DNA from: Saccostrea cucullata
Lineage: Eukaryota
Reading direction: 5' to 3'
NCBI RefSeq assembly: GCF_032062105.1
Contig: NW_026935291.1
Location: forward strand, 434,001-498,000
DNA: 64,000 nt
Positions 23,074 through 64,000 of the stretch are shown here, one piece after another (position 1 is the stretch's first letter; each line of letters opens with the position of its first letter). The notes under the pieces were generated by a model. That model did not search any database. It worked only from the letters and a program-made list of their open reading frames with translations, and was not told where the DNA came from. A program made the translations under genes and the position numbers.

Positions 23074-23082
23074 TGACGTGGC
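23074..23082 (+). promoter_or_regulatory. UPRE/XBP1-ATF6-like site TGACGTGGC
   Basis: Matches the UPRE consensus TGACGTGG, ~95 bp upstream of the ATG of a predicted ER-resident protein. Confidence 0.4.
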
Positions 23083-23172
23083 GAGAACGTCTTCTACACA
23101 CGTGCAATTTTAACAAGAACGTGCAATTTTCTTGCACATATATTCGGGTATCCTGTCATTCCTACAGGAAGG

Positions 23173-27648: not shown

Positions 27649-27855
27649 TGAACGTTTTCAAATATCATTGTTCTAATCTTCACCCTGAAGTCATGAAATA
27701 ATATTTTTACAGTGTACCTCATCCATTGTATACCTAACACGGTTTCGTCCACAATGGGGGGTCGGGTATCCATTACTTTTTAAGGAAACCTAATGTTCTT
27801 CATTTCATTGTCAGATTAGGCATTTTTTAACGATTTCGGTTTAGTTAGAGATATA

Positions 27856-28818: not shown

Positions 28819-29156
28819 TAGATAGAGATAGAGATAAATGAAAATGAATGTATGTCCATAGGATTAAGAATTTTCATTTTGAAAGAGGACAACGATCGTA
28901 TTGTTCAATTCTTTTTTTATATACGTTATGAACAACATTTCTACGCAACTTTCATCTATAAGTACTTTATGTATATGATTGTATCACTTTTAATTTAAGG
29001 ATTTGACCTTCTTATAATATAAAAAGAAACCTTCCAGTTTCTGTGGACTTTTGAGGAATGAATGCAATTTACTCGTTTTATGTTCAGCAGAATGAAAAGA
29101 GAGAATTTATGATTCATTTGTTTATTAAGGGATAAGATTCGTAGTGTTGACGATTA

Positions 29157-30182: not shown

Positions 30183-30790
30183 TGTTTCGGAAATGTGTTC
30201 AAACCACACTGTCTTATCAGCTGTGATAATTCTAAGGCCATTGAGAGTCACGGAATCCTGTGTGTCCCGAAGGTTTTTGTTAAAGAGCCTTGTGTTTGCG
30301 TGGCATTTACGACTTACATAACAACAGAAGCGAATTCTTAAGTGGATTGTATTAAATCAAAAATAAAAACAAATTATGGTAAAATGTTTTGTTTTCATTT
30401 TTGGTTTGATAAAGTCCGTGAAAATGCTCTTTTATTAGACATTGCCCAGATGTATGCATTTTTGAAATTTTTAGATGTAGAAACGATTGGCAGTTGCGGA
30501 CAAGAATTGAAAATAATCGAATGATTGATATCTAACATGACTAATTATAAATGTTTGTTCTTTTTTAAATTTAATTTATGTTCAGGAAAGTATGAATTCC
30601 AATAAGATTTTGTGGACTTTAATACGGTAATTGGGTGTTCTTGACCTTGTTTGAAATATTTAGAAATACCTTAGAGTTGAACTGGCAACGAATCCTGATA
30701 GTTCTGGCAACTACAATGTATAGCTCTTTTCCTAGATTTCTTCAGCAACAGATTTACTCGTCTTTTCATAAAACTTGGAGTCAAAGACTA

Positions 30791-39500: not shown

Positions 39501-42500
39501 CAACAAATTAGAAAATACTTACAATACTTACTATCGATCCTGAATACTTACAGTTCGGGGGCACATCTTCACCAGTCTACAACAGACCACTGTGTTTATA
39601 TCAGTGGTACAGCAGGATTGGTCAACACTCAGTGCTGGCAGAAATATGCTTACATCTGCGAGAGACCAAGAGGTAAAATGATATTTAAAATGACAATTTT
39701 TCAGAGAGTAGACAGGATTAACACGGCTTATAACAGACGCTAAGGAGTAGACAGAGTTAATAAGGGTTGAGTCAGGGGTACGTCAGGGAATAAACAGAGT
39801 TAAAATGTGTTGAATCAGGGCACATCAGAGAGTAGACAGAATTAACTGGGGGTTAGGACAAGGCACGTCAGGGAGTAGACAGAGTTAACAGGGTTGAGTC
39901 AGGGCACGTCAGATTGTAAACATAATTAGGGGGTTGAATCAGGGCACGTCACAATGTAGAGAGAGTTAACATGGGTTGAGTCAGGGCACTTCGGTGAGTA
40001 GACAAGGTGCTCAAGGACAGCGACAGGTATTCGTAGGAGAAAGAAAGAAACAGGAAAATGTCATGGACGGACTGGGTGAAGGAGTAGACAGAGTCTGCAA
40101 GGGTTGAGCAGGGAACGTCAGGGTGTAAACAGGATTAAAGGGGGTTAAGTCAGGGATTTCCAGAGAGTAGCACAGGGTTAACAGGGGTTGAATTAGGATA
40201 TGTCAGGGAGAAGACAGGCTTCGCAGGGTTTGAGTCAGAGGACGTCAGGGAGTAGACAGGGTTAACAGGGGTTTGGTCAGGGCACGTCATGGAGTAAACA
40301 GAGCTAACAGGGATTGAGTCAGGACACGTCAGGGAGTAGACAGAGTTAACAGGGGTTGAGTCAGGACACGTCAGGGAGTAGACAGAGTTAACAGGGGTTG
40401 AGTCAGGACACGTCAGGGAGTAGACAGAGTTAACAGGGGTTGAGTCGGGGCACATCAGGGAGTTGACAGAGTTAACAGGGGTTGAGTCAGGGCACGTCAG
40501 GGAGTAGACAGAGTTAAAAGGGGTTGAGTCAGGGCACAACAGGGGAGAAGACACGGATAACATGGGTTTTTGTTACGGGGCACTTCAGCGAGTAGACAAG
40601 GTGCTCAGGGACAGCGAAAGCTGTTCGTAGGAGAAAGTCTGGAAAAGAGACAGGAAAATGTCAGGAACTGACAGGGTGAAGGATTGGATTTTTTTTATCA
40701 AAGGCAGAAAATCACCACAGTAGGGTAAAAGAATTAAGGAACCTGTAGATTTTGAATTAATCAAATCCAATGCTAAGATTTTATCAAGTCTGTTCCTTAA
40801 CGCTTAGTCATATTTATGTGGAAGCATCCTTATGTATTTTATCTTGAAGAGCTACATGACCCCCTGGGGTAGGTTGGGCAGTATTTTATAATATGTAATA
40901 CTTAGTAGTTTAAAAAAAACTGTACAATACAGATGATAAAGAAGAGAAGGGTCATAATTACTAAGGTGAGCGATTATGTCCCATAGATGCCTTGTTAAAG
41001 AGATATGATACCTGTTTAAGAGTCAAATTCGACGTTTAAATATCTCAAGGAAATTGAAGACTTCTCAGACAGTTTTTCTCAAAGAAGGCATATTTGAAAC
41101 TCGTTTTTAGTTAGAAAAAGAGATACACAGTAAGGCAAAGAGCAATCAATCTATTACTTTATTTTTGACAGGCACCCCATTGACTTGTGACGCTACCCGT
41201 GGATGGCAACAATTCAATAACTTCTGTTATCAGGTCCACCCCACTGATGTACAAACATGGAGTGGCGCGGTGTATGTATCCATCTAAAAAGCAAACCTTA
41301 AGTGAAAATTTCATTCAATATTCATCGTATAATCTCGTATAGTAAATTTCTGGCTTAAGCATAGTTTACTTTATACTGTAGCCAAGTGTGCTCCAGAAAT
41401 GGAGGAGATCTGGTAGAGATTGACAATGATCAGGATCAAATCGCCATTCACGATTTCGCCCGAAACACTAAGCGCCCTCTGTGGACAGCATTACACAGCG
41501 TTCAGACGGTTAGCAGGAAGCTTTCTGCAAAGTTATCAATTTTTTTTCTCATTGTTGTTTTTCACAAAATACTCCATGCTTTTTTTGAGTATTATATTGT
41601 CCATTTGTAGGGTAACACAAACAACTGGCAGTGGTTGAATGGGACGGTGATGACGTCAAATCGAGCACTTCAGTACTGGGCTAATGGCCAGCCTCCCGTT
41701 CTCCGGAGGTGAGGGGGTTAAAAAACAGAGCTTTATTTGACAATTAGATATAGTTATAAAATTCTGATATTGATGTTTACATATTATCATATTTAGCGGA
41801 AGCCTTTATTTGATAGTAATTCTCACCTATGAGTACAACAACAAAGATATCTGAGTCTAAGTTTTATGGACTTTTTAGATAATGCTGGAAGAAATAACTG
41901 TCTTTATAAAACAATTTAAAGAATTAGACATTAAGACAAATTGATATTTTTAAAACGTATATACAGTCACCTAATCCACTGCACAGCCACTGATACATGT
42001 ACAGAGACCACTGCAATTTTTGTGACTTGAATAGACCACCACCTTAAAGTGTTAAGTATGGAGGACCAGTTAAGTAATACGTATTTATCTTTTGAATTAT
42101 AAACGAAACCGAATGAATGTCAATTCTGTTTTGTTTTAGCAATATGCTGAACCGTACCTGCGTATGGATGAATAACGGACAACAAGACTATCACAAATCC
42201 TGGTCTACGGACAACTGTAATGTCAGAAAAGGCTTCGTCTGCAAGAGACCAGAAGGTAATTAAAAAAATAGGTAACACCGGAAATCAAAATTAATAAATC
42301 TTCACTTTTAATGTGTAATTCCATGAGTACTTATATTTGAATCTTGAAAAACGTACTTAGCTATTTCTAGAGAGATTATGCTTAAGATTAGATCTTAATT
42401 GATTTGTTATTGCATAAATGGTTTGTGTTTAAACGTACCTTGATATTTGAAATAGTTTGATTGGTTGATTTTCAAACAGGTGTGTGTATGCCGGGCTGGG

Positions 42501-45500
42501 TACCCCACCAAAAACTGTGCTTCTTATTCAACATTCGATTTAAGTACAACTGGTATCAGGCCAACAGGTTCTGTAAAAGCTCTGGAGGGAATCTTGTCTC
42601 CATTTACGGGTGATTGCCTTTAACATTTATGTGAATTTTGTGTATATATATATATACAGTCATGTATATTTAGCATATTGTTATTGTTTTTTTTTGTTTT
42701 TTTTACTTTGAAAGTTATAATATCCATTGTCAAAATTAATGTAAACAAAATATCTTTTAGAACGACGTTTACTAACTTCTTAAATTCGTACCTCGATGAA
42801 CTACAATCAGCAGGCATTGACTCGTTCTGGATTGGACTCACTGGTATGTGTTCGATATATAATGCATGAATTCGTTTTCTAGCTAATTATTTTCATGTTG
42901 ATTAAAATGTACAGTATACAATTATATCTGTCTGCCTATGGTAAATATGAATCGTTTTACTTTACTTCAAAACCCTTGGGAAGTCACGAATGTACCATGA
43001 CTTGTCAAAATGAAGTATGTCTTTATAAGAGCAAAAAGAATTCGGACATTACATCGGTGTTATATAATTCATATTTGAATTTTTTGGCCTCTGATATTCA
43101 AAATCTAGTAGGCGCTAAATCACCTTTAATGGCAATGTTTGCATGCATGTCTACATATGAAATTCTTTCCTCCAGACAACAATAAGACGGGTGGTCCCTG
43201 GATGTGGACAAATGGAGGAAACATCCAGCACTATCAGCACTGGCCGGGGAACCATGCTGCCCGTAACACTCCCAACAAACAGGACTGTGGCTATATCTAC
43301 AGCGGTATCTATCAAAGACAATTATATTCAATTTGACCCATATTCTTTTTTTTTTTTTTTTACATATGTCCTTATCCTTTTTCATTCAATAAACATACCC
43401 CCACCCGCCCAACCAACCTCCCACCCACCAAAAAATAAAGAAACGTATTCATTGTTAATCAGTTTCCGTCCAGTTACTTTTATCTTCTTTGACACACAAG
43501 TATTAGTTTTATTATTCTCATTTTTAGGTGACAGGAGTGGATCTTGGAGAACGACCAACAACTGTGCTACACAAAAGGCGTTTGTTTGTCAAATCCCTAT
43601 GGGTAAACGTGTCAACCCAGTAACCACGCCCAGACGTAAGATCATCCCAGTAGTCTGAATATTGTTATAGGGACGTTTTTGAATGATTGTTTCTTAAATA
43701 AGAACAAATTTATGAATTTCACAATAAAAAGAGTGATTTAAAACATAGCTTCATGATAACATTAATAATTGTTATTTTATTAGTTTAAAATAAATTTTAT
43801 TCATAGAAATGGATTGAACAGCAGGTATAACTGCCTATGATCGTTCTCTCCATAATTTTTTTTTTATAATTTTTATTTTAAATTTCTATCCCATGTATAT
43901 CTTAATTTTATTTTATTGCAAGGAAAAAATATCTTACAATGAATTATTGAATTTTATTTAATCATTTTAATATTTTACAATTAATTATCGCATTTTTAAA
44001 AATCATTTCAATATTGTATAATGAATTATTGAATTTTATTTTAATTTTTTACTTTCTTTGGCAGCCCAGTTTAAATGTACTGGCCACTGGTTGCTTTTCA
44101 ATGGAAACTGTTACCAGTTTAATGACACCAGATTATCATGGCTTAATGCCCGCCAAACTTGCCAAAATGCAGGGGCGGATCTAGTTACCATTAACTCAGC
44201 AACCATCCAATCTTACATTCTCAGTAAGTCATTGCAAACTGAGAAAATAATTTTTTTTTTCTCTTCCTTTGAGATGAAATCCACATTTTATTTGCCCACC
44301 TTCTTTGTACTTTAAGGACAGTCCCATGGAAAGGAATACTGGATCGGATTAAATGACAGAACCCAGGAAGGTCGCTGGCAATGGCTGGATGGAACCACCG
44401 TCAGTATACTCTTGTATAATTATTTCAAAACAACAGAAATTAACATAGATTAATTAAAATTGATCGTAAAATTATTTTTCACTGCAATATGCTAATACAT
44501 GTATATAAAATTCAGTCTTGCAAAAACCACAACATAACCGTTTGGTAATTATATTTGTAGGGCAGCAAGTACTATCATTGGAATGCCCACGAACCAAACA
44601 ATCTGGGGACTGAGAACTGTGTGGAGATGAATTTTATGAACCATCAAGGAAAATGGAACGATCGTCAATGCTCCACCCTTGTCCGTTTTATCTGCCAAAA
44701 ACCAGCAAGTCAGTTTACATTCAAAATTCATATGATAAAAAGATTTTTACAGGAAAAACATCTTTTTCTTTAACAAAACACCTTTTCTTTATTTATTTTC
44801 ATATAAATTCGTGTATTTTTAAAAATTCTTTTATAAATCTTCTTTTCAGGTAATGCCCAGCTCCCTGTCAGCGTCTCGACTACTGCAGCCAGTGAGTAGA
44901 ATTTAATCTTTATACTTCCAGTGAAATGAAATACAAGATCGGGCTTGTTTTCATTATATACTGTATACTCTCCTTTGTTATTTTCATTAGAGTTTAACAT
45001 TATAATATTCATCTTATTTTTCTTAATTTTTCTACACACATGTAAGCTAAGTACTAGACAGTATTTATTTTTTATCAAAGATGTCTAGCGCCCGTGAGAA
45101 AATCACATTATAAGAGTACATGTAGAGCTAAAGGATTAGATAATATATTTATTTTTAACAAAGTTTAAAAAAAAACTGTCTAACAAGTGTGTCCTAGCTT
45201 GAGACAAAAATATATTGCTACAGACATGTACTTCAATAACTTTATGATTTTAATAAATGTATCTCTTACCAAAAAAATGTAGAAACTAACGTGACTGTAC
45301 TTTGCCAAAAGAATTTGGAAACTTAAAATTATACTCCTGGTCTGAGAAATAGGGTACAGAAAATTGTAAATAAGTTGTCATACCTTAGTCTTTTGAAGGT
45401 CTTTTATATTCCTTGACCTTTGTAGTGCCTATAAGTGTCCGCTGTGGTTTGAACTGGGAGGAGGATCCAAATTCTAACAATTGTTACCAGTTCTATGACA

Positions 45501-48500
45501 AACAGTTGGACTGGATGGATGCCAGAGAAGTCTGTAGGAACGGAGGAGGAGATCTGGCCAGTATCGAGTCCCGAGTAGAACAGGCCTACATTGCCGGTAA
45601 GGAAAGGCATAGAACTTATGACCAGTGTATTGAATTATGATGTGGTCCTTTTCAATTTGGAAGTGTATATGATGAAAATCATGCAAACAGTTGAAAAGGA
45701 GAGAAATGTCTGGTTATGTGCATTGACTATGTTCTCCCTGTTGAATATCAGCTGTAAAATCTGCAAGACATATTAAAATATTAAATACATTTTACAGATA
45801 AGAAAACTACTGTTTTGGTCATAATACATAACCACTGCAGAGATGATATGTAAAACACAAATACTCGTAAAATGCAGTCTTTGAAATTGTTTTGTTTTTA
45901 ATGTCTTTGTAGGAAAGATCAACAATATGAATTCTATAGCTCTGTGGATTGGGATAAATGACAGAGCGACAGAGAACAAATTTGTATGGGTTGACGGTTC
46001 ACCTGTAGCTTATCTCCACTGGGCAAATGGTACATGTATATAATACTTAACCTTAACAGGTCAAATGTTAACTCAGTATATTTATCTTAATTTGGCAAAT
46101 TTTTATATTTATCTTACATGTAACTGGCCAAATGGCTAAATTTTCCTAATTAATTGAGCAAATTATACTTTCTTACTATAACTGTTTTTGTATGACAGTA
46201 GCTAGAGTGTTTTTAATAGTAAAGGAGATGGGTAAACTCAGCATGCAAAAAGCCCACTAGCTTCAGATATTTAAAAATCATATTCAACTTGTCAATTTAG
46301 TATGCAGAGTAAAGTTCTCATCATTGATTTTTATGAAATCATGATAAACAAAAAGTTTTGTGGAAAATTTTTCGTTGAAATTTTTTCTTTTATTAAAAAA
46401 ATGTGGTTTCCATTTTGTTTAAACCCTAGCAATTAAAATCCTGAGTTGCATTCTCTATTGAGATTAGCACGCTAAATACTACGCTACACAAGTCCTGAAA
46501 GTTTGTGGCATTTAAATCATATTTGTGATCTGACCATTGAGTTAAAGGACTTAAGTATTTCTCGAAAAGATATGAAAGTTATGTCATAAAACTATATTTT
46601 TAAAGTATAGTGGGTCTTTGCTCCATAATTTTGGAAATCAAAATATGTATGTTTGTATACAAACTTTGAGGATTAACTTTCAAAAAATGAAGAGAAGACC
46701 CACTCATATAAAAAAAAATAGTGTTATAGTGTGAAAAAATGACTCGTTTTGTCCTCTTTCGTGTGTGTATAATATTTCATAGGCAAATAACTTCAATCTT
46801 CATGAGATTGTTGCAAGTTGTAGAGATTTTACTTAAAGTATACTTTATTGTTAGATGAAATATTAAGGAAAATTATTTTTCACCTTCATGTTTGTTGCGC
46901 GATGGGCCTATCTCTCGTCATGTTCACCCATCTCCTTTCTCAAACTGTGTTTCTAAGACTTTATCCACCTGTCCTCGAAGGACTTTATTATCAGCCGCCT
47001 ACTTGTAAGGCTTTATTATGATGGTACATGTATTATGTTACAGGCGAGCCTAACAACTACAGGAATAGAAACGAGGATTGTGGCAACATGTACACCTCCA
47101 CTTCCTACTGGAACGACAGTCCTTGCAACGGAAGGAACGGCTTCATCTGTAAAAAGCAATGTAAATATAGGGAAACAAGAAATTAGAATTAAAGAATAGA
47201 ATAGTGTGTGCTTAACAGGATAGCTCTTTTGCAAAGCACATTATTTGGAGACTTGTTTATAGTACAGTGTATATAAATGAACGAGCTTATTGCAAACTAA
47301 ACTTAAAATTTTTAATCATGGATTTTACGGAAGTTTGACTTCAATTGAATCTATATATTGTTGTGTTTTTATTGTTTATATTAAAGTCAGATCTACAAGG
47401 TAATTTCAAACAAAATATTCAATTAAATTTCTTTTCAATACATCATTATGTCATATGGTTTTTTTTAATATTTGTAAAGTTATGTTAATCATTGTCCTGT
47501 TTTTAACTTTTGACCCTTTGTCCCCTTTCAGCCAGCCAGCGTACTACCACCACCCCTCCCCCTCCTGTGGTCACGAAGGCGGGGTATGTCATGGGATGTC
47601 AAGATGGCTACCAGCCCTTCCAAGGAAACTGTTATCACCTGTGGCAAATACGACAGAACTGGAACGCCGCAAAAAGTTTCTGCCATCGTCAAGGGTCATT
47701 ACTAGCCACTATAAATAGTAGAGAGGAGCAAAACTTCGTAATGACCATGATTCCAAAGTGTAAGTTTTAAATTTCTTTTTATCTTGGATTCTTTTGAAAA
47801 ATTGTATCTGGAAAGTTATCATATTATCTTTAAAGGTTAAAGTTCTGTCATCTGACGCGGTTACTGATCGCATGTATGTAATAGGTATTATTGTAATTAT
47901 ATTGTTTCTGAATATAATTGTGTTGTCAAGAAAGAAACAATTTCAAAACAGAGGTAGTTTTTTCCTGATTCTTTCATTGAAGAGGGGATAGCGGGGGTAC
48001 ATGCAGAAGTTAATGAAAGTTAATGTATCTGTTTTTGCTAAAGAGCTACGTAGTGAGATGAGTTTTTTTGTATCTGATTGTTCTGTAATGATATGGATAT
48101 AGATTACTTAGTGGTATCGCAGGCCACTTAAGTTAGGAATGGTGGTAACATTTATAACGGTTTATGTATTTGGCATTTGTTTTTTACTCTATATCTGGAG
48201 GTTGATTTTATTCTAGTCATAGTTATTCATTCCATTATTGAAATACTGAGCAACTTCTTTGTTGTGATAAATCTTTATTGCGTTGAACTAGCTGTCCTTG
48301 AATTAGTATACAGATGGATTTTGGAAATGGTTTGGGTAGAATATTGTTCTCCATGAATTTTGGGGATAATGTTACCAAAATACAAAAAATAATAAATTTA
48401 ACGGTTTCTTTTACTTCTGATTCAGACGGATATGGCTACTGGATTGGACTAAATGACCTTGCAAACCAGATGACCTTCTTTTGGTCCGATGGGAGTCCTG

Positions 48501-51500
48501 TTTTGTATACAAATTGGGCGGCACGCGAACCAAATAATTATGGGCATAAAAATGAAGACTGCGTTGTCATGCTTAGAACGGTACGCATTCAGAGCAACGG
48601 TATCTCTGAGTAAATCCGTTTTGTTACCGAATGATAATTTTTTTTTTAATAGAAAATTTTATTTTTATGGTCAAGAACTCGCCAAATTTTTCTTTCATAA
48701 CATTCCTGTAGATAACAACGTTTATGAGGTATTCTTTGCACTTACAAAGAAAAAAATGTATTAAAATTTTGTTTTGCATGATTATATTCAATAAAAATCA
48801 TGAGTAACAAAGTAGAAAGAATTATTTTGCTTACTAGTGGATCTTCTTCATTATATTCATGAAAATGATGGCTTTTTTCTATTTTAAATAGAATGGTCAA
48901 TGGAACGATGCCATATGTCAGAATCCAGCTGATGGCTTCATTTGTAAAAAACCTATGACCTTGATGTCTGCCACGCCCAAGCCTGAATCAGTGGGATGTA
49001 CCTGGGTATGTTGCCATTCTAGTCCCTCATTATTAATAGAGACATTAACTTAGAATGTAAGGTCAATGCGTACGTAGGTTTGCTCTAAATAATCATATCG
49101 ACAAACCTTCGGAACCTTGCCCTTAAGTTTCTTGTCTGGATTTTCCAGAGTTTTATGGTTTCTAGAAAAGATGTTTATTCAATGTATTATACAGTTCTTT
49201 CTGTGGTTGATTTTTTTTGCTTTTAACGAGATAACTAAGTCGTTATAACGAGATAACTAATTCGTTATAACGAGATAACTAAGTCGTTATAATGAGATAA
49301 TTAATTCGTTATAAAGAGATACTAACTCGTTATAACGAGATAATTAACTCGTTATAACGAGATGATTAACTCGTTATGACGAGATAACTAAGTTGTTATA
49401 ACGAGATAACCAATTCGTTATAACGAGATATTAAGTCGTTATAACGAGATAACTAAGTCGTTATAACGAGATACTAACTCGTTATAACGAGATACTAACT
49501 CGTTATAACTAGATAACTAACTCGTTATAACGAATTAAATATTTTTTTTTCTTTTTAAAAATGAGCCTATCCGGCTTTCGTACTTAAGTGAGCAATGTGG
49601 GCCTATTGGATCTTTTATCTAGAAAATAACGCACTTCTCTCTCTAAAAATGAAGAAATTAATATGAAATCAAAATGCATATTGAAAATGACAGTACATGA
49701 ATAGATATCTTGAGTATCGCTTTCAATAAATATCACACAAATGATTAGACGAATTTATTTTATATAATTATCAAATTAAGATATAATCAAACATATATTT
49801 ATATGTTTCCTTTACAAAGGCACAGAGAGTAACGTAGTGCATATTGAACTAATGTAGTTCTCCGAGGTAAAATATTGAAATATTATACAATTGTGAAATA
49901 TAAAACCCTAGCACCACCTATTCAAAGGTTATGATCAAGGTTAACGCTTTTAAAGGTAGGACAAATTCCAGGGGCAAGTTTAAAGGGTCAAGGTTGTTGG
50001 TTTCTAAAGAAAGACCTTGTTCCAAAGATTACATATATGGGAAGTATGAAATGCTGGCCCTTAACGTTCAAAAGTTATTGCCGAGGTTAAAATTTGTAAA
50101 AAAAAAAATAGGTCAAACTCCAAGGTCAAGGTCAAATTTGTTAATATTTGATGAAAGGTCTTGTCACAAGGATTACATAGGTAAAGTGTGAAAGATCTAG
50201 CCTTTACTGTTCAAAGATTTGTCCAAAGTTTTTTCGTAAGTATGGTATGTCCAAGATCAAGGTCAAAAGACGAAAATAGTTGGTTTGAAATGAAAGGTAT
50301 TGCCACAAAAAATTGATCTTTGAAATATGAAATTCTTACTACCGTTTAAAAATTAGAGCCAAAGTAAAAGTTTGGATTTCTTGTGTAAAATAGGGTCAAA
50401 CTCCAAGGTCAAGTGGTCAAGGATCTTGATATCAAATGATAGATCTTGATACAAGGGTTGAATACTTGAAATATGAAAGCCTGTGTTCTAACCTTTCAAA
50501 AATTATGTTCAAAGTTGTATTTGAAAAGTAGGTCAAATTCCAATGTCAAGGTCAAAGGACCAATCTCCACGTCCCACAGTGGGATTCGAACCCGCGACGT
50601 AAGGATCAGCTCCTTACTTTTCGTCTCTAGAGCAGATGCTCTAACGACTGCGCCACGCGGGCGACTGAAATGGGAAAAGACATTACCATATCACTATTAG
50701 TAGTACTTACACTGGTAGTACTTACAAACAATTCTTTTAAAAAGAGAGGTGAGTTAGCGCTGTAGCCATCATAAAACACAGAGGTAGATATCAGAACCGC
50801 TGTAACTTTAATTTGCTGAATTGATAAATTATTAATAAGAAAGTACTGTAGGGTGGTGGTGGCGGTCTCAATTCAAAATAATGAATTCTAGAGTGGACTT
50901 GACAATGACACAGCTCAATGACTCTGCTTTATAAGCATTCTGTGTTTTACTGTTATTTCAATCTGCGGTGAAAAATGAGAAACCAATAGAACAAATGGGC
51001 ATCAAGTTTATAATATTCAGCTGAACTTGGATGAGACCGTATAAACCAAGGTCCCATGTCGCAATAGGTGCCGGCACGAAAAAGATCCATCACTGCTCTT
51101 GAAAGGACCGTAAGTGCCGAGTATAGCCTAGGATAGCAGCTCTCCACCGGCAAGTGGTGGCGTCTCCATAAAAATGAAGAATTCTCGAGTGGGCCATTAA
51201 ACAACATACAATCAATCAATCAATCAATCAATCAATCTTCCATTTCAAGGTTCAGAGATTGATTTCCAGATACTTGCAAAACCAATAGACCTTTTCACAA
51301 AAAATTTCATAAATAAGTTTCAACCTCTAGAGAAATCTTAACAAGGTTTCACAAAAATTCGTAGAGGTTCTTGCCTGTAAAATTTAACAAAGCTTTATGA
51401 GAGCCTTTATCTTTCACATAGAATAGTAGCTGCAGAACTGTACCTCTCTGCTTTAGAAAATTCGGACAGATAAAGCAGAGAGCTACAGATCCTAGCGTTG

Positions 51501-54500
51501 TAAAAACCTTCGATTTACGCCGCCGATTTTTTGTCGCTACTTCAGGTATTTATATCGTGTAGTTTAAACTTTCTCTGGCTTTTAGAATTGTATCCTATAA
51601 TTAATCATATATTTAACTCTTATTTTTGATACTTTATTAAAGTTTATTTACCTTTTAATGGTCTGAAACCGTCCTGTATTTAATATTGTAATGTCGGTTT
51701 AAAAGAGTTTCATTTTGACGTCCGTAACCAAAAACAGCCATTTGTTAGCATTGAATGGTAAGTACATTATCAAGAATTTAAGTTAAATGGAAAATTATAA
51801 TTATAAAATACCTTTTTAAAGCTGAGGGAAGTATAAAATAGAAAAAAAAATTGACGTGAGCGACAAAAAATCGTCGGCGTAAATCGCAGGTTTTTACAAC
51901 GCTTGGTTCTGTAGCTCTCTGCTTTATCTGTCCGAATTTTCTCAAGCAGAGAGCTACAGTTCTGCAGCTAATAGAATAGTACCTAAGCTACATTAATTCA
52001 ATATCACGTTATCGTATCCATGGCAATCATAAAAAATATACTTTATGTAGAAAAACGAATGCTAAAGATACTTGAATAACCAGTTAGTTTTGCCCATTAA
52101 ACAAAAACTGGGGGCCAAGTACAGCTGTAGTCTACTTTGCAAACAAAAGTTTGTTTTTTGGCCAGTTTGCAACTTATTACCATGGCAACCCAAGAATTAA
52201 TTACTCTATGGAATCTTTTCATCAACAGAGATATTTTGATATATACTACTTGTATCTATTTGTTTTTATTTTTCATTCAGAAGGCCTTTTTTTTGGAAAA
52301 TCTCATTTCAACTTTCAAAATAAATGACTGTATGTAAAAAGGTAAAGTGGATACAAAAGTGGTCGCTAGGTATTCAGAATTATACCCATGGGTTAATAAA
52401 GTACCAAAATAACTTTATAAGACCAATATTAAATTGACATTTATGCCCAATTGCATTTTTAAGAAAAATATCTATTCGTATCTATCAAAATCTATACCAA
52501 AAAGGCCAAAAATAACTGTTTTTGCATTGTTGCTAGGGAAAATTTTCTGTTGCCATGGAGATTAATGATTATAAATTATTCTTTCATTTTAAAATTATAT
52601 GAGAGTTATTTTCTATTGCTTGAAAAATTGTATCTGCCACAAAAAGATAAAAATTTATAAGATTTTTAACCCAATCCTTTACCATTTTTCACTTTTTAGT
52701 TATCAAAACATCCAATTTTGTTGCTAGGCAACGGATAGGACTTTTCAAAAAACCCACGCTTTCAAAGTCAATTTGTAAAAGAGAAATCCTCTACTTTTAT
52801 GTGAAAGTCATGCAGAATCTATATTAGCTTGGTATTTTTTTTAAATTGACCTTGAATATTGTCAAAATCAAGGAAAATGCTGAATCAGCAAAAATGCAAA
52901 AACATACATATATTCTAATGTCTACCATAGTAATAGCTTCAGATAAAATATCAATGTTTTGTGTGTTTTAAACAAATAAAGTGTGTGTCTTTATCATACC
53001 AGTAAATGAGAATTATTGTTAAAGTTTTTATATATAATTTCAGGCTTTAAAGATCAGTGATTTTCAGTGCCTTCAAATTGAAAAATTGGCTGGTTGCTAA
53101 GGAAATTACTTTGATCAGGTTTCCATAGTAACCATGATCCAACACATTTTTTATTTAACATACATGGATCATAGGTCAAGAGAAATCTATGTGTGGAAAA
53201 TCATTGAATTCTGAGAACCCGAGTGAATCACCTTTTGCATGATTTTTATATGGACTGGAACTTAATTTGACAATACTTTTGTATTGATTTTGTTATTCAA
53301 TGTGCATGTTTCTTTAACTTTTATCCCGAAAGAAAAAAATTCTATATGTTCTTAGAACCGTTCAATTCATATTAATTTTATCATGGCATTAATTAGTTTT
53401 TCCTCACGAAGGAAAAACATTGGTGTTTTATATGTCACACTTTCTAACCATTTACAAACATCTATAAAAATGAGATATGTTTTTGATTTACTTGTAGCCT
53501 GCGTACGGGTATGGAAGCTATTGTTACCGATTTGTCTATCAGACCAAAACTTGGCAGGATGCTCAAAAAATTTGCGTCAATGCTTTCCACGGGACACTGG
53601 CTTCCATAAATGACAGGTGATAGCATAAAAAATCTAAAAAATTTAAGGGAATATTTTAAGATTCATATTAATATTTATTTCAAATCAAATTCTAAGTGTT
53701 TTCTTGGATGAACAATGTTGTATAGAGTTAACCCCCCTCTCCCGACATCAGCCGGACTTAAAGTTGTCATTTTCTTAAAAAATTGTAATACAAAAATCTA
53801 AGGTGGAATCTGCCTCAATACTTGAAGTATCCAGAGGAAGTTTAAAGAAAATGTCAATTAACGTCTCCTGATAAGCTCCTTTTGTAACAGATTCACAGAA
53901 GCCTTCCTGTCTGCTTACATGTCCTATCAGACGGACTATTTCTGGATCGGATTGTCTGACACCCAGACCCAGGGAACTTACAAGTGGGTCAACGGAGTAC
54001 CTGTTACATACTCCAACTGGGTTGCTACCCATACTGGTACAGTACTAGTCCTTTGAATAATTTTTAATTAGTTTATACATGTACATGTAAATCATTAAAG
54101 TCTCGTGCCATGACTCTCTCTCCAAAATAGGAGAGGATCGTACGTCTTGGATGTGGTTTGCGACGATGATATGAAACTTTGCTTTCCTTTTGAATAAGAA
54201 ATGTTAAACTGCATTTTAAGAAAAAAACTTTGAATGTGTAGGGAATGAAATTGCATCTTGTGTGGCGTTAACAAGCCGTCATCCAAAAGGACTTTGGGAG
54301 AACTTGAATTGCACAGACCAGCACCACTTTATCTGCCAGCTCCCAAGACAGGGCTTCACCACCCCCGCCATCACAACACCCCCAGCCAGTCTACCCTGCC
54401 CCGGGGGTTACAGCGGCTACCAGTCTTACTGTTATAAGGTAAACCGTGCCCTTTATACAGTATCAGCCAAATTATGTTTGACCAACTGAAACCTCAAGAC

Positions 54501-57500
54501 CCAACAAAGCGTTGATTGGTTGTTTGCAATGGGGCAGAATTTATTATATCTTCTTTTATAACTCTGTATCAATAACAAAATTCTAAGTTCTTTAAACTTT
54601 CAACATCTTGGCTTAGTGTAGATTCAGACAAGAGACTTTTCATGATAAAAAAAGTCTACAATGCAATCAAGGAATAAGGGAAACGGTTTATTTAATCATA
54701 AATGTACATTTTGTAACAGGCAATAGGACTGACAGACAACACTCAGTGGATGTCGTTTACCCAGGCCAGGGATTACTGTCAAGGTTACGGAGGGGACCTA
54801 GCCAGCATCCACAGTGCAGGGGAAAACAGTTTTATTAAGACTTTAACACGGTAAGACAAAAATCATGTCTTTTAGGTTTACGAGTATATTGTGTCAAAAC
54901 AGCAAATGTAAGGTAATTTGAAACGGTTTATAATAAATTTTTATTCATATTACATGTCATTTAAAAATGAAGAGAAATTACAGTGTATGCTCTAGGAATG
55001 AAGTGATAGCTAGTTGACTTTAATATCTTTTAATGAAAATTGTTAATAATTTTTCAATACAGATCGGCATCTGTCAACATCTGGATTGGACTGAATGACA
55101 GAGATGTCGAAAGTGGTGAGTACTTGTCTTAAATGTTTTCCCTATCGCCTTAAAGGTAAATTAAATTTACAAATTGACTATCAAATCACTGTCATTTAAG
55201 GACACAAGTGGACAGACGGAAGTGCCACAGATTATACTCAATGGAACCGAGGAGAGCCTAATAACTTTGCCGATACGGAAGATTGCGTTGAACTGACTCG
55301 CGGCATTGGAGGTTGGAATGACGTCAACTGTTTCTTCAGTAAGCCGTTCGTGTGTAAAGTCGCTAAAGGGGTGCAACTCTCTACAACAGCAGTACTACCT
55401 ACGGCCTCATCATGTAAGTCTTCCCTTCTCTATTTCGGATCTTTCAAATTTTAATTTAAATAATTTAAAAATATGTTCATTCAATGCTCTGTTTTATTAG
55501 CTGGATCGTGTGGAACAGGATGGGTTTTCTATAATCAGTTCTGTTATTACATTGGTAATGGCACTACGCTCATGACCTGGTTTGATGCTAGATCCACGTG
55601 TAATCAGATGGGAGCAGAATTGGCCAGTATTCACAGTCAAGATGAAGACAACATGCTTGTTGGACAGGTAAAATTAGGGATTCAATAACAAATCACCTGA
55701 CTAGCTAAAGGACTTCAAACAGATTACATTTTCAATCTGTTCGCCTCCATTTGCATAGATATATATTTCTTTTCCATTTCTTAGTCTGTGAATACACTCA
55801 ATTAATGAAGAAGTCCAATAAAGTTTATTTTATCAGTTTTGTGCATGCTAACAATTTTCAGTGGAAATCACCAGCGGGGAAAAATAGGTCTAATAAATAC
55901 GGTAGTTGCGTTTGAAGTGCGTTTGCAAACATATTTGCGAAATTCATTCGCTTGGCTCTCTGAAGTGTACGCTTGGACCTGTGTACCAGTGAAAACTGTC
56001 GCTAGTGCTCAGAGTCCGTGTACTTTCGTTGATGTTCAATTGTATTGTCCTGTGTTACAACTGGACGTGAAACAGACAAACCAGACGTACTCAAGACACC
56101 GTATACATAAGCATTGCTCTAACGGTCAGAAACCAATTTGTCAGTTTCTCATTCGTTTTACATTGGTTTAACAAAGCACTCGATTATTTCCTCAAACGGT
56201 GAGGTCTTTTAGTAAAAATTTAAGCTTAGATTTAAAATATAGTGAAAATCTAAACACGTCCACCTATTTATACGCTGCATATACAAGTATGTATATTGCA
56301 ATAGCTTTAATTAATACGATCTTGGAAGTACAATGTATAAAGTTTCTTGTACAGTCATGTATTTTAAGGATTCAATAATTTTTCTTTTGTTTGATATGTT
56401 TTGACCTTTAGTAAGAAATTAATTTTAAATAAACATCTATTCTTCAGTATACAAAGACCAAACGAACGGTGGACTACTGGATTGGACTAAATGATATCGA
56501 GTATAACAGTAAATATGTGTAAGTTTACACTTCATCAACTTATCAACGTATGCAATTATAAAAATAAAAGCATTGTCAGTATGCAAAACAAATTTCATGA
56601 CTTTTGCAATTGGAAAGAATTCATCAACTTGAAAATTTACAGTAAACCTCACCCCTTTCAGGCTAGTAAAAAAATAATCTGAATGATCTTGATTACGCGG
56701 TATTTGAATTGAATGAAGTCTGGAAGTAAATCAATAGCTGAATTATATGTCAAACCATATACGTGTATTTGTTTTTATTTTGAAAAGACCACTTTATATG
56801 TACGTGTATTCAAAACGTAGACATGATATTTTGTATCTGTCCTTAAGAATTTTCCCGCGCTTTTTAGGTGGACAGACGGTAGTTTATTGGACTTTGTCAG
56901 CTGGAGTCCTCATGAACCAAATGACTATGGCGGCGGGGAAAACTGTGTCACTATGCCCTTCTGGACAGGCGGAAGTAATTAAGTTTTTATTAAAAACCAG
57001 TTTATTACTTTTCTGTATACAAACATATCTTCATTGACTTTTTCCATCCAGTCATATTAACACGTGATTTTATTTTATTACTGAATCTGAGAACTTCTAT
57101 CCAGAAAGCCTGATTAAGTTATGTCAAGGATGGCGTTCAATCAATTGTTGATAACGTTGGATCAACGTTAAATCTGACGTTGGCCCAATGCAAATTTGCT
57201 CATGGGCCCCATGCTGGTTTCTTTCCAGAATATAGACTTTAAGACTCATGTTGTATACATTCTTTAACAGAATGGAACGACGACAATTGCAACATGAAGA
57301 AAAACTATATTTGTAAGAGACCAGTGACTGGAAGTACCAAACCAATCAATCCAGGAACCACTGCCATCATCGCCGCTGGCTGTCCAAATCCTAATTTCAA
57401 ACCCGTCCCACATTGTGAGTTAAATTCCATTTCAAAAATCACGTCTGACATCGTTAATAAGTTCAACTCCGCGCCCCACATTGTTCGTTAAACTCAATAC

Positions 57501-60500
57501 AGTATTGTGTACTACATTTTGTTATTTTCAAATGTAATTTTCCCATGTGCACCGCTTTTTTCAGACGTAAAGTTATCAGAATTTATCACATATGTTAATC
57601 CCCGACGCAATTAATTCTTTCTTGATCGTCTATAATCTTGAAAAATGCAACGAAGATACAATTTCCCATCAAAATATTTAACATTAAAATATAGGAAACA
57701 AAAAAGAGAGATGGAAAAGGAGGAAAATGTGCTAAGAGTTCTTAATTTCAGAAATCTGTAGATTATGTTTTCAAGTTACTCTCATGCACTTTTACTGAAA
57801 TTAAATAAAGTTTTACCTATACAGCCAATAGATGTTTCTTCATTGTCCAAAACAAAGTGAACTGGACGGATGCTGTGTCTGCATGTAGGACTGCTTATCC
57901 AGGAGCGACCTTAGCAACCATCAGCAGTCTGCAGGAACAACGTAAGCCGCTTTTTAAAAATATCTGGAAGAAATATGATCGTATTTTAAATTGACCTCCA
58001 GAATGATCCAATAATTTGTTCCAAGTTACCAGAAATTTGCTACATGTCAGTAAATGCTGACACTACATCAAATGCGAAGAGATCTTAAAACAAGTTTGAA
58101 ATTCACTACTGTGTACAAGGTGATTTTCGACCTATGTTGTTCTCAACTAATTACACTTACCAAACATTTTGGTCTCATTTTACATGAACGCAGGTATATT
58201 TGTATTAAGGAAGTTACTAATCCCTTCTTTGAATTTTGTCAAAATTAATGAACCGACTTGTATTGAGTAGAAAAGGTGCAAAAAAGGAGCAAAAATGTCC
58301 TTATATGAAGGGAAGATTTACATGTAGTTTATCATAAAAAAATTTCTACTCGATAGCATCAAAGAGATTTGTGATATTGGACTTTCAAAACCCCATGGAC
58401 CTCTGGTTAAATATCGTTTTGAAAAAAAAGAATGGGTTTCCTATATATTTTCCAGTATTTTTGAATTCGATGCTATATGACAAAGATCCCAGATTGACTC
58501 TCTGGATTGGTCTAAATGACTTACGTCAGTCACGTAGGTTTACATGGGCAGACAACTCTCCTCTGACGTTCGTCAACTGGTACAAAGGAGAACCCAACAA
58601 CGCACCTGACGGATCCAACGTCAAATGGAACTCGGTAGGTAACATTGATTGCTTACTGCATGTGATTATGCATGACTCTCATCATGGCTGCTCTCATTTT
58701 GAATATCAAAGATTTAAAAGTTTTATTTGTAATATTTCAATTTAACAGGCTTTGTACATCTCCAACTCAAAGGAACTTTCTAATGTATTTCAAAGTTAGG
58801 CAACTAGATTAAGTTTTACAATAGAGATGATTTGGAGTCGGTAGGAAAACACATGTTGGATTTTATTTTAAGGAATTCATTCGAACTGTGAACTGTGATA
58901 TTTGCATAGGAATTCTCTAGCAAATAAATAAATAAATATTGGGTTTATATAGAAGGTTAATGATTACATAATTCTGAAAAAATACTACAATTCATAGATG
59001 AATTGGCTTTTGAAGGGCTACGATATAAATCATAGTTTTATGTTTGTGGTGTTCGTGACTTGTTTCTCAGGAAGATTGTGCCGAGCTTTATATAGATTCT
59101 GACAGGGCGGGGCGTTGGAATGACGCGGTGTGTGGTCAAAACCGAGGCTTTGTGTGCCAGCAACATCGGCGTAAGTCACGTGGCAATACCCATCATGCAC
59201 TGCAACTACTGTCTTCAAGTTTAGAAATCACATTCCCCAGTTATAAATATTCGTTTCAGCTGCAGAATCGCAGACCATGTAAAATGCTGTTGTCTTGGGA
59301 TTCTCCATTTTCAGAACTAAAAACACGAAAACGAAACAGCTATTGTGGATTTTGACTCTACCATACTTCCAACATATTCTTTTGAAAATCTCATGAATGG
59401 CATGCAAGTACAAAATGTGCTAGAAAAAAAAATCTCAAAATACAGAGACAGAAATTAATTTGAAAACGAGTTTTTACAACAGAAGGAACTATGGTAGACA
59501 TTTGGGGAATGTTCTATATATGTCACTGTTTGTAAAGTACTGTGGTATCATTATTGTTCATAGGGGACCAAAGTTCGTGGATTTTTAGCAAAATTTTAGC
59601 ATATTGATTCATTGCAACTACTGTATAAATGATTCAACCACGAAATTAAGTTCTCACTTACAAGTAAAAGTATGCCTGTCTACGAACATTGACCCCCACG
59701 AATTCAAATGCTTCCACAGATTTCATGTCTGAATATGTTACTCCTTTGGTCTGTCCTTACATGTGCACAAATCTTGTTTGTACAGGAGCGTTGTGTTGAA
59801 ATGTACGCCTCCAACAGCGCCGCTGGTCAATGGAATGATAAACAATGTGGCGCAATGCGAAATTTTGTTTGTCAGCAACATCGACGTAAGCCACAACAAA
59901 TCATGGCACAAGCAGTTTACGCTAAAGAGCACTAATCAGGCTCTTCATCTCATTATATCAACTAATTTTTATAATTTTCATTTCAACTTATTTCAATATT
60001 TTTTATTTAAACTAATTTCATTATATTTTATTAACACAAGTTTTAATTTCTCTAATTTTTAATTTTTAAATTATCTGAATTATATTCATCTAGAATTTCT
60101 TTAAAACTAAATTACCTCCATTTTGTTTGATGTCGGAAAAAATGACATTTGTTACTTGTATGCATAATTACTAGTATGTCATTTGTAATCAATAATAGAA
60201 TAACAAATAATTGGAATTTAAAAATGAAAAAAAATGAAAATTTAAAAAACTAAGCATTTCCATTTTCGAATATTTTTTAATGATTTTAAATTCTGCATCA
60301 TGTTTATTCATTATCACAGGCATTACACACGGTTCAATTATATACAATGAGTGCACAGATCACAAATAATCACTTTTACATTTTCAAGATATACGTATTT
60401 TGATAATGAAATGGATACTGTATATTTCATCAGACTGAGCTATTGTGTTTTGTGTAATTGTACAACAATTTAGATTCTAAATAATCTTTACTTTAATCTA

Positions 60501-63123
60501 AGACTATTATAGTATTTATTCATACTGATTACATACCTAAATTCTCGTGTTTGTGTTTTTTTCACACTTTCAAATTGTTGGACAGCCTTGCACAGTTGTT
60601 TACTGTAAACCAATTATTATTCGCATGCAAGAAAAATTCGCGCGACTTGCGATCTTCTGTTACTTGAGAAAATTTCTTTCTGTCTTTCTTCATCTTTCTT
60701 GTAGTAATTCTCAGTTCGCGAAATAGAATCGTCGCAAAAACATTTTAAACAAAAATTCGCGAATAGAAGTCGCTAATAATAATTAGTTTACAATATATAT
60801 TGGGCTTTACCAGTCATATCATTCTTGATACGAACAATTGATTTGAATACAAATTTTTAAACGTTGACAAAACTGTTTATCTATGTTATTCAATTCAAAT
60901 TATGATTTGTAATAAAAAGACAGTACTTGAAATCCGAAAAATCCAAAAATTGGTTCATACAATGTCTGTCATTAAAAATACAAAATTAATATGCAATTTT
61001 ATTCTGGATGACATTACAATGGCACGCTTTGCTTAGATTAATTAACTTATAATTTAAGTAATTTAGAAATCTTACCCCTGCAGAGACCGGCGTTGCTGTT
61101 GCTTCTGTCCAGGGAGCTTGTCCCTCGGGATTCGCTGCTTTCGGGGCCAGCTGTTATCGATATTTCCCGCCAAACGGTGCTGCTGGCTCCTGGACGCAGG
61201 CGCAACAAGTGTGTCAGCAGAACAATGCGCAGCTAGTGGTGATAAGCAACGTGTATGAGGACGGGTTTGTTCAGTCTTTGGCGGGAGATCTCGCTCCTAA
61301 TGGATATTGGATTGGAATGGCGGACCAGACTGTAAGTACTGAAGAGTCAAGAATCAATAGATTTAATAAATAATTTCAATACTTCCATTTCAAGTGCATA
61401 ATGATGATTATAGATTTTTCTAAGCGTTTGTTCATATTGATAGCCAATACGATGCCATTTGCATGATAACAACCTTAACATTACAATATATCTCGAATTT
61501 TCCAGATTTTGCAAAATTTTAATGAGTATTGTTAGAAATAAGAAAAAAAAACATACTTTGATTTAGTCTTCGGGTACCTATACGTGGGTACAATCTGGCT
61601 GGCCAGTCACCTACACCAATTGGGGGGCTGGGGAACCAACTAAGAGTACCGGCGAGGGATGCGTAGCCATCATGAATCACAAATGGAATGATACACAGTG
61701 TAATCAACAGCTAGGATTTGTCTGCCATATCAACAACAGTAAAATTTCTTCTACTTGTAGTATATACTTCTGAAATAAAAATATTACTCTGACGTAAAAT
61801 TCACTGTACATATAAATTAATTTGCAAAATAAGTTAAGAATTCAATGACTCGCGCGTATTCGTACTTTACTGCACAACTGATACAGTATGTGAAAATCTT
61901 TTTTTTCATTTAAGACACGCCCCTTCCTACACCCCCACAGTCATCAGTGAGCTGTGATGGCAATGCTCCTATTGCTGTTGGAGATAGTTGTTACTATATA
62001 TCGGGCTTCAAAACAAAAACCTGGCCCGAGGCGAGCTATCTGTGTGAGAGAATGGGCATGGAACTGGCCAGTTTTCACTCCATTGCTGAAATGAATATCA
62101 TTCTACAGAGGTTCCAGAATTACCAGGCACAGCCAGGTGAAACAGCTCCAAGATATGCCGAGAATATATGGTTAGGAATGACCAAAGGATTTTCAGGTAT
62201 GATTGTTGGATGAACTGGTCTAGTAACTCAAAAACTATATCTGAAACAACTGTTCTTTCTGGGACAGCAAAATATCTTCCTGTTGTTGAAACAGAAATGG
62301 AAAACAGTTGTTTTCATATTTTTATTGTCGTAGATATGTTATTCAAAGAGTCTATTTGCATTGAAAACTGTTTCAAGAGCTTCTTTCCAATAAAGTGTGA
62401 AATCAATGTTGATGGTCTTTTCATGACTTTTCTTCTTCAGACGGGTTTCAGTGGAAGGACGGATCCGCTGTCAATTTCCTGAACTGGGACAAAGGAGAGC
62501 CTTCTGACGCAATGAGTTCCTCCCAGGAGGAATGTGTAGAGATGTACACAAACAGCGGAAAATGGAATGACGTCACATGCTTCACCAAACGAAGATATGT
62601 CTGCAAGAAAGCAGCTCGTACATATCTATTTTTCTTAATATTTGATTTTGAAGGAAATATTGTATTCAACAGAATTAATATGTTTGCATGGATGTTATTA
62701 TCTTTCTTTGATTGAGGGTTTAATTATGTGCCAACAAATTAAGTAAAACATATGAATTTTTGTATATACGAGTAAAATGATAAAATTCAAGGACTTTACT
62801 TTATTTATTTTGGCCAAGAGTAGTTGTTTTTAACCATTAAACTTATCAAACTTCTTTTAAGGATCCATAAGTATAAATCATATACCAAGGGTATTTATTT
62901 TTAGAGATGAGCACTGTGGGGTTCAAACTGACAAGTGGAAATCTCCCACCTCTGAATCCGAATCCTGGAACAACAGGATACAACCCATGGGCACCTGTGT
63001 CATCCACAAATTTCCCAACCAACCGCATCACCCCCAGTCGGCAGACCCTTCAACCTATTACTCAGCCACAGGGAATGGGAAATCCCAACGCAGCCCCTCA
63101 ACAACAGAGTTCATCGTCAATAA
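33506..63123 (+). CDS. Macrophage mannose receptor-like multi-CTLD lectin (12 CTLDs plus Pro/Thr/Ser stalk); 3' end, presumably TM and tail, lies beyond the window
   Basis: Signal exon 33506-33575 (MYFKPGLRILGSLSFIFLQYLNF), then phase-consistent exons 38106-38263, 38485-38627, 39554-39672, 41172-41271, 41382-41508, 41611-41708, 42140-42255, 42480-42609, 42761-42843, 43176-43304, 43528-43635, 44065-44223, 44317-44399, 44561-44708, 44850-44891, 45426-45596, 45913-46029, 47044-47160, 47532-47759, 48426-48580, 48892-49005, 53498-53616, 53891-54036, 54242-54438, 54720-54850, 55063-55115, 55201-55413, 55501-55667, 56448-56518, 56868-56974, 57271-57414, 57825-57941, 58456-58634, [59071-59170 OR 59786-59885], 61084-61331, 61567-61738, 61915-62196, 62441-62617, 62905-63123. 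Repeated C..W....CY / W..A...C...GG.L / WIGL.D / EPN / WND.C...F.C motifs. Confidence 0.92.
34040..36652. mobile_element. Cluster of HINE/pearl-like elements in lectin intron 1 (~34040-34381 +, ~35710-36035 -, ~36170-36652 +)
   Basis: Shared ~170-180-bp unit (aaaaagtaaaataggagg..cacaatg...gaaagt..cattaaatt..attcagtggtat..gttgcggataagagatgggta), (GGAC)n tracts, AACTAG start and cc...gggggtataa terminal hairpin. Confidence 0.7.
39700..40680. repeat. 42-bp G-rich minisatellite
   Basis: Unit gagtagacagagttaacaggggttgagtcaggacacgtcagg, most homogeneous at 40310-40540; produces the 14-aa repeat in ORF 40150..40563. Confidence 0.92.
49224..49582. repeat. 21-22-bp tandem array (aacgagataactaagtcgttat, ~14 copies) with one MITE-like end
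   Basis: Head-to-tail self-complementary units. The 3' end gagcctatccggctttcgta resembles the TIR ggccctatctggacaccata of 30791-31404. Confidence 0.85.
49850..50555 (+). repeat. Degenerate ~150-bp satellite-like array (aggtcaaactccaaggtcaaggtca)
   Basis: Recurrent ggtcaaactccaaggtcaagg...gaaaggtcttgtcacaagg...gaaatatgaaa motifs at ~49955, 50110, 50255, 50395 and 50530. Confidence 0.7.
50553..51237. mobile_element. One SINE split in two: 5' half on - (50553-50665), 3' half on + (51027-51237)
   Basis: The halves join exactly at ggtccttt|ggatgagacc; (CAAT)n tail; TSD ccatttca at both original ends. Confidence 0.8.
51427..51970. mobile_element. MITE with ~115-bp TIRs and 9-bp TSD (Mutator/MULE-like)
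   Basis: ATAGAATAG|tagctgcagaactgta...gattttttgtcgct ... agcgacaaaaaatc...tacagttctgcagcta|ATAGAATAG; TSD at 51418-51426 and 51971-51979. Confidence 0.9.
59071..59170 (+). other. Mutually exclusive exon A of CTLD10
   Basis: tttctcag|GAA...CGG C|gtaagt; 100 nt, phase 0 to 1; EDCAELYIDSDRAGRWNDAVCGQNRGFVCQQHR. Confidence 0.88.
59540..59719. mobile_element. Short MITE between the alternative exons
   Basis: ta-ctgtggtatcatt...ggggaccaaagttcgtgg ... ctacgaacattgacccccacg...aaatgcttccacag imperfect TIRs. Confidence 0.6.
59786..59885 (+). other. Mutually exclusive exon B of CTLD10
   Basis: ttgtacag|GAG...CGA C|gtaagc; 100 nt, phase 0 to 1; ERCVEMYASNSAAGQWNDKQCGAMRNFVCQQHR. Confidence 0.88.
60603..60793. 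mobile_element. Short MITE
   Basis: ta-ctgtaaaccaattattattcgc ... gctaataataattagtttacaa-ta, with internal ttcgcgaa motifs. Confidence 0.55.
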
Positions 63124-64000
63124 GTAAGTAGTGTGTTTTACAATAACAGAAAGTATATTTGTAGTACAAGGTTTAACTTCATGTCAGTATACTAGAAAGT
63201 TATATTTCAGTAACAAAAAAGTTTGTCTTGGGTATGAAAATAAGCTTTCAGAATGAAATGATATTCAAGTTAAAGCTGATATGAACTCTTAAAAAGGCAT
63301 CATTTTACATCTTTGTACGACTTACTACATTCCTGTACGCCTTTGTCCGCCATATTTCATCGATTCCGCCATATTTAATTGAAAATTTTTGGTCACCTGT
63401 ACCTGCTATATAAAGCTTTGTACAATTGTTTCACTTGAGTGATTTTCTAGCCTGGCTGTCGACATGTACACAACTCCGAAAGCATAGTTTTTAGAAGTCC
63501 ATAAACTGACCAAATACATGTTTGAAAAGTAAAAATTCAACAAAAACTAGAACTATACCGAGAATTGAATTATTTTTGAATGCATTTGCTGCAATGTAGA
63601 AAATATACTAACACGGAATACATTCATGTACAGCAAAAATCCATGCATATCGAGAAAACGCGTCAAACGCAGTGATAAAAACATTTACCTGAATACTGCT
63701 ATCGTTACAGGGATGTGCACATGTCGAAAGAATTATCCTATTTTACTTTTATTGAAAAATGCATCTTAGAAGTCATGTAATCCATTGCTAACTCAACAGT
63801 AAAAAATGCTTGGACACATGCCAATGCCGATCATTTTATTTGGTCAGGGAAAATATCAAAGGTTGAAAGCTCCGTGGGGTTGATTGAAAAAAATGCAAAT
63901 AATTTTTTCCAATAATAAACATTACTCTTGTCTGTAAATGTTGTAAATAAAATTTATGAAAACATGGTTTAATTTCATCAAATTTATAAAAGAAAAAAGC

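Follow-up and report, generated by a model that had tools for sequence, protein, structure and literature searches.

Two homologous 100-nt exons, A and B, lie in tandem in an MRC1-like receptor gene of Saccostrea cucullata and encode alternative versions of the β3 to β5 region of one C-type lectin domain (CTLD10), together with the start of the following linker. Positions refer to the window, the whole stretch of 64,000 nucleotides analysed here, unless stated otherwise (Table 1). Mutually exclusive splicing of this pair, which had been proposed in an earlier note on this DNA, is supported by its presence in five oyster genomes, by isoform pairs in three species and by conserved intron flanks. 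The accessory Ca2+ switch and the Dscam-like diversification proposed in the same note are not supported. The exon pair is real and oyster-wide and, judging from predicted isoforms, very probably expressed. The best explanation as a whole combines a duplicated pair, a regulated choice between its members, decay of frameshifted products and a change in glycan preference, and we assign it a probability of about 65%. Its components differ in strength. The exon anatomy, the conservation, the selection on both copies and the annotated isoforms are held with high confidence, whereas the regulator, the nonsense-mediated decay and the ligand change, taken jointly, stand only slightly better than even.

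The receptor gene and its protein

A single exon led to a Pinctada orthologue and from there back to Saccostrea, where the S. cucullata RefSeq protein XP_062580490.1 aligns with the window as 41 exons, starting at position 33506, with zero mismatches at the junctions. This protein uses exon B. Pfam identifies 12 Lectin_C domains in the receptor, and counting of the tryptophan motifs places the swappable segment in domain 10. The tandem lectin domains are followed by a single transmembrane (TM) helix and a short FENAMY tail, both of which are encoded past the window end. The FENxxY-like motif of this tail is presumably an internalisation motif. The EPN motif is present in six of the 12 CTLDs.

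The receptor is an MRC1-like type I receptor with 12 CTLDs. Its best PDB sequence matches belong to the vertebrate mannose receptor family (MRC1/CD206, MRC2, PLA2R and DEC-205), with which it shares the type I organization, the tandem CTLDs and the FENxxY-like tail. Unlike the vertebrate proteins, it has 12 CTLDs, six of them with EPN, and contains neither a ricin-type (cysteine-rich) nor a fibronectin-II domain, as Pfam reports lectin domains only. The oyster protein is mannose-receptor-like and not a member of the vertebrate family. We know of no comparable exon pair in the vertebrate members.

Two degenerate tandem repeat tracts (39700-40690 and 49230-49535) are located in introns of the receptor gene. 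Inspection of translations by eye identified three neighbours: a sulfotransferase-like exon (1334-1600, plus strand), a PAF-acetylhydrolase-like gene (19383-20860, minus strand) and a secreted JmjC-like gene (23077-27648, plus strand).

Table 1. Features of the receptor gene and of the region around the exon pair (window positions unless stated otherwise).
Feature	Position	Strand	Remarks
MRC1-like receptor gene	33506..64000	+	41 coding exons with B (42 with A); 12 CTLDs, TM helix, FENAMY tail
Last exon of the receptor gene	about 502689-502900 of the contig		past the window end; read directly in genomic sequence
Constitutive exon	57825..57941	+	CTLD10 N-terminal strand and first helix; from XP_062580490.1 mapping
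Constitutive upstream exon	58456..58634	+	WIGLND, EPN and long loop; phase-0 donor; from XP_062580490.1 mapping
Exon A	59071..59170	+	derived (probably), acidic; probably minor; absent from the S. cucullata RefSeq protein
Intronic element after A	59189..59200	+	CC(C/T)AT(C/A)ATGCAC; YCAY-rich, conserved
Dispersed repeat in the A-B intron	59531..59728	+	at least 40 genome copies
Acceptor region of B	59746..59785	+	UG-rich; best-conserved acceptor flank of 35
Exon B	59786..59885	+	ancestral-like (probably), basic; in S. cucullata, S. echinata and O. edulis RefSeq proteins
Intronic 10-mer after B	59945..59954	+	TCATCTCATT; YCAY pair; invariant in five oysters
Constitutive downstream exon	61084..61331	+	linker and CTLD11 start; phase-1 acceptor; from XP_062580490.1 mapping

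Anatomy of the exon pair

Exons A and B are adjacent, equal in length and identical in their phases. As had been claimed, both have intact splice sites, each with an AG acceptor and a GTAAG donor, and they sit between a phase-0 donor at 58634 (GTAGGT) and a phase-1 acceptor at 61084. Inclusion of either exon alone preserves the reading frame. When both are included, a TGA is reached at the fourth codon of B; when both are skipped, the frame shifts and a stop follows after 50 codons.

The two exons share 19 of 33 residues, and 10 of these 19 are specified by different codons, which reproduces the earlier count. At the nucleotide level, 55 of 100 positions are identical, with a saturated pS of 0.885 and a pN of 0.338. 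Beyond the splice junctions, the introns flanking A show no similarity to those flanking B, and the region is single-copy in the S. cucullata assembly. A recent duplication or an assembly artefact is therefore rejected, given also the synonymous saturation and the occurrence of the pair in four further genomes.

A profile search of the introns revealed no further hidden exon pair in the Saccostrea receptor gene, where the next-best match to the exon profile scores 38 versus 115. In other species, the intron matches proved to be a decayed copy or tandem repeats that are partial and nearly identical. In several cases in Magallana, Ostrea, Pinctada and Mytilus, the 3´ end of an exon is repeated in tandem with its donor into the following intron; this gene has often undergone recent partial duplication. 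The dispersed repeat inside the A-B intron plays no part in the mechanism as far as tested. An intron of the Magallana gigas orthologue carries a Pao-type retrotransposon ORF of 1926 aa on the minus strand (24188-29968 of the stretch taken for that locus).

Annotated isoforms

Equal-length RefSeq isoforms X1 and X2 that differ only in the use of B or A are present in M. gigas (XP_065939762/763), C. angulata (XP_052711034/041) and Crassostrea virginica (XP_022336327.1/336.1), under the title 'macrophage mannose receptor 1'. The M. gigas pair recurs in two annotation generations. These XP isoforms are predicted models, and RefSeq isoform models are usually built on transcript alignments. None of the retrieved proteins holds both A and B. 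Searches for transcript-derived fragments spanning the exon junction returned only genomic single-exon ORFs or nothing.

B is the only version in the proteins retrieved for Saccostrea and Ostrea and in the latest C. virginica model, which suggests that A is the minor form, as far as annotated models can indicate. A frameshifted product that skips both exons is annotated as X3 in C. angulata and as X3 in the older C. gigas set. The statement in the earlier note that exactly one exon must be used consequently holds for the full-length receptor and fails for these two Magallana annotations. Both X3 forms end soon after the EPN loop of domain 10; they may be targets of decay, or they may give a secreted ectodomain of nine domains. 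On paper, the AG at 61084-61085 would allow both exons to be skipped in frame; the annotated skip forms take the frameshifting acceptor.

Conservation, selection and origin

In S. cucullata, S. echinata, Ostrea edulis, C. virginica and M. gigas, both exons are intact, 100 nt long and arranged in the same order; these five genomes represent three genera-level lineages. The C. virginica contigs were assigned through identity to RefSeq peptides of that species. Relative to S. cucullata, dN/dS ranges from 0 to 0.16 for A and for B alike, in agreement with the proposed old duplication with purifying selection on both copies. Neither copy is lost or degraded in any of the five oysters. Between the two Saccostrea species, synonymous change is lower in A and B together (5/43) than in the flanking exons (34/100; p=0.007), which is expected where exons hold splicing signals.

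The search of other bivalves with both exons, as the earlier note had suggested, recovered the intact pair in the four further oysters and one exon in Pinctada and Mytilus. In Pinctada imbricata and Mytilus trossulus, this single exon has the same intron phases, and an HMM search of the whole interval detected no second copy. The duplication is thus oyster-specific and dates to the oyster stem. The A exons form one group on a long branch (support 98/100, in a tree of 33 columns only), and each of the five bivalve outgroup segments gives B a higher score than A; for Patella, A is the closer of the two. The long branch of A and the higher scores of B indicate that B is probably the ancestral-like copy and A the derived one, to the extent that sequence comparison can tell. 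Elsewhere in the M. trossulus gene stretch (30130-30261), a tandem copy of a CTLD C-terminal exon (the EPN-WND half) has decayed and contains two in-frame stops, in contrast to the intact oyster pair.

Intron flanks and possible control of exon choice

For 35 orthologous introns, the conservation of the flanks was ranked across Saccostrea, Ostrea and Magallana. Of the 35 donors, those of A and B have the first and second most conserved flanks, respectively; of the 35 acceptors, that of B has the most conserved flank. YCAY motifs are enriched and conserved downstream of both exons, although such motifs are short: five follow A and five follow B, whereas the other donors of the gene average 1.7 and have at most 4. 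This contrast is weaker after B in O. edulis and after A in M. gigas. An exon is enhanced when Nova, or Pasilla, the orthologue in flies, binds downstream of it (PMC3165201), and the downstream YCAY clusters make these proteins the lead candidate regulators of the choice between A and B.

The products containing both or neither exon reach early stops ahead of many further junctions, so that decay probably sharpens the exclusivity. Three other mechanisms were considered and discarded. Steric exclusion does not fit an A-B intron of 443-7871 nt, U2/U12 incompatibility does not fit splice sites that are all ordinary GT-AG, and long-range RNA pairing is not conserved among species.

The predicted sugar-binding site

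Structure models of the two M. gigas forms of CTLD10 show an ordinary CTLD fold in each case (pLDDT 91.3 and 92.6), but do not resolve the long loop that precedes the exon. The exon aligns to L-selectin residues 88-117 and to SP-D. The ligand numbering of MBP-A and the selectins on the exon is taken as an assumption. All five primary-site ligands (E-P-N, E and N-D) are common to both forms in all oysters, and both forms keep the full primary Ca2+/mannose-type site (EPN, E and WND).

The two forms contrast in the β3-β4 loop, in the two residues after WND and in surface charge. At seven positions, A and B each have a fixed residue of their own (L/M, I/A, D/S, R/Q, A/K, V/Q and G/N). These fixed differences cluster around the WND strand (exon positions 6-9, 15, 19-20 and 26). 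The net charge is -2/-3 for A and +1/+2 for B. Exon positions 7, 9, 19, 23 and 25 presumably correspond to Val180, Trp182, Val192, Thr196 and Arg198 of dectin-2, and at positions 9, 19 and 23 every oyster has different residues in A and B. These five dectin-2 residues constitute its secondary site (PMC5555199). Contacts 263, 265 and 277 of cow CD23 fall in the corresponding stretch (PMC6791321), and the disaccharide specificity of both lectins is set by secondary-site residues in this part of the fold (PMC5555199, PMC6791321). The seven fixed differences therefore appear to fall around a secondary sugar site, and the likeliest effect of the exon swap would be a changed preference for extended glycans.

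Alternative explanations

The earlier note had attributed the functional difference to EDC in A and ERC in B, which would alter accessory Ca2+ binding and hence the Ca2+- or pH-dependent release of ligand in endosomes; this now appears unlikely. It draws on exon position 2, which is an invariant Arg in B of all six species and D, E, K or N in the outgroups. This Arg could replace the cation, and the receptor tail bears the putative FENxxY-like internalisation motif. The equivalent side chain, at position 260, belongs to the accessory site of cow CD23 (PMC6791321). The same position in A, however, varies across oysters (D, D, D, E and H, with M. gigas annotations in disagreement between D and E), so that the Asp of EDC is not conserved. 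Moreover, four residues after the WIGLND Asp, every oyster has Ser or Ala instead of the Glu that is present in CTLD4, 5 and 8, indicating that the site is probably incomplete with either exon. L-selectin, which binds a single Ca2+, also has EDC. A different proposal is that the swap alters a protein-protein or interdomain surface, through packing of CTLD10 against CTLD11, pH-dependent bending of the ectodomain or contact with a protein ligand. Mannose-receptor-family ectodomains change shape via interdomain contacts, the exon extends through β5 into the linker, and a uniform charge shift could act on such a surface. However, the linker-proximal ends of A and B are nearly identical and the fixed differences concentrate around the WND strand, and this proposal is considered quite improbable.

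At the RNA level, the choice could be enforced by structure, either by docking/selector pairing or by a stem between exon A and its downstream element that encloses the donor of A. In Saccostrea, this element can pair with the 3´ half of A at -22 to -28 kcal/mol, and the donor lies inside a consensus fold in which 88.7% of cells are paired. The best pairing partners nonetheless vary by species, no conserved docking/selector partner and no covariation among oysters were detected, and the covariation score is no better than that of shuffles (97-137 of 500 reach it), with an unfavourable covariation term of +1.6. Control by RNA structure is correspondingly given little weight. It is very improbable that A functions in Magallana and Crassostrea while being a silent or decaying pseudo-exon in Saccostrea, a possibility raised by the B-only RefSeq proteins retrieved for S. 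cucullata and S. echinata. All 33 residues of A are identical in the two Saccostrea species, with synonymous changes only, against a dS of about 0.45 in the neighbouring exons. The splice sites and intronic elements of A are intact in Saccostrea, whereas the truly decayed Mytilus duplicate has its two stops.

Proposed origin and mechanism

The preferred explanation is that one ancestral exon, encoding the β3-β4 half of CTLD10, was duplicated in tandem in the oyster stem lineage and that both copies were retained as regulated, mutually exclusive exons. B would have stayed near the ancestral sequence as the default, and A would have diverged into a minor or restricted form. The choice is most likely made by RNA-binding proteins that act on the conserved intronic elements, with the YCAY clusters pointing to Nova/Pasilla, and nonsense-mediated decay would remove the frameshifted products. 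The switch most likely alters which larger glycans CTLD10 accepts, not whether sugar is bound. B would favour anionic ligands, and A neutral or less anionic ones.

Relation to known exon pairs

Homologous tandem pairs of mutually exclusive exons that retune a ligand-binding domain are known from FGFR1-3 (IIIb/IIIc) and integrin α7 (X1/X2). As in these genes, the duplicated oyster exon supplies the C-terminal half of a single extracellular binding domain, the annotated full-length isoforms carry one copy or the other, intronic elements are conserved and double inclusion shifts the frame. The oyster pair differs in that it lies in a C-type lectin domain rather than an Ig domain or a β-propeller, and in that it is confined to oysters. 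Arthropod Dscam1 likewise uses mutually exclusive duplicated exons in a cell-surface receptor (PMC3165201). The oyster gene, by contrast, offers two variants in one of 12 domains, as opposed to Dscam1 arrays of 12, 48 and 33. The description 'Dscam-like' is not appropriate for one duplicated exon in a gene with no array and no conserved docking/selector pairing.

Other invertebrate receptors vary at comparable places. The annotated isoforms X1 and X2 of an Anneissia japonica MRC1-like protein (XP_033107416/417) are of equal length and, as in oysters, swap the C-terminal half of a CTLD. The swap affects the first CTLD (residues about 105-150) and includes the EPN itself (RPD versus EPN). This candidate mutually exclusive pair is apparently of independent origin. 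RefSeq isoforms of the scallops Pecten, Mizuhopecten and Argopecten vary in an insert of 7-15 Thr/Pro-rich residues, which lies in the long loop of the domain that corresponds to CTLD10, directly ahead of ExC and at the junction of the oyster exon pair. The site of the pair thus seems, from these isoforms, to be alternatively spliced in another way in scallops. In several annotations of a Branchiostoma multi-CTLD receptor, equal-length isoforms swap a block at residues about 437-500, which appears to lie in an F5/8 (discoidin) domain.

Significance

The A and B isoforms are already in automatic annotation and are apparently undescribed for this gene. Our search found no published description of the oyster pair; the main shellfish-immunology journals and most subscription journals lay outside its reach. 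Neither alternative splicing nor exons are mentioned in a review of these bivalve lectins published in 2025 (C-type lectins; PMC12842671). The pair is a new instance, in an oyster lectin receptor, of a familiar kind of alternative splicing, with only two variants in one of 12 domains. It adds a coding exon, A, that is absent from the retrieved Saccostrea and Ostrea proteins. The two forms of CTLD10 are identical but for 33 residues, with class-specific differences fixed across the oyster family, and provide a natural pair of lectin domains for testing how a secondary site controls glycan choice.

The usual explanation for the diversity of bivalve lectins is the expansion of gene families. Here, one gene very probably yields two receptors, which probably differ in their sugar preferences. 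The broader view that a tissue- or infection-dependent switch toggles the glycan preference of one domain, and that multi-CTLD receptors were diversified in this way independently in several invertebrate lineages, with the oyster CTLD10 pair, the CTLD1 swap of the crinoid Anneissia and the scallop micro-exons of the same loop as its cases, is put forward only tentatively and is at present doubtful. If isoform use does shift in haemocytes, in gill or palp, or on infection, recognition in a farmed animal would vary along a second axis, that of splicing.
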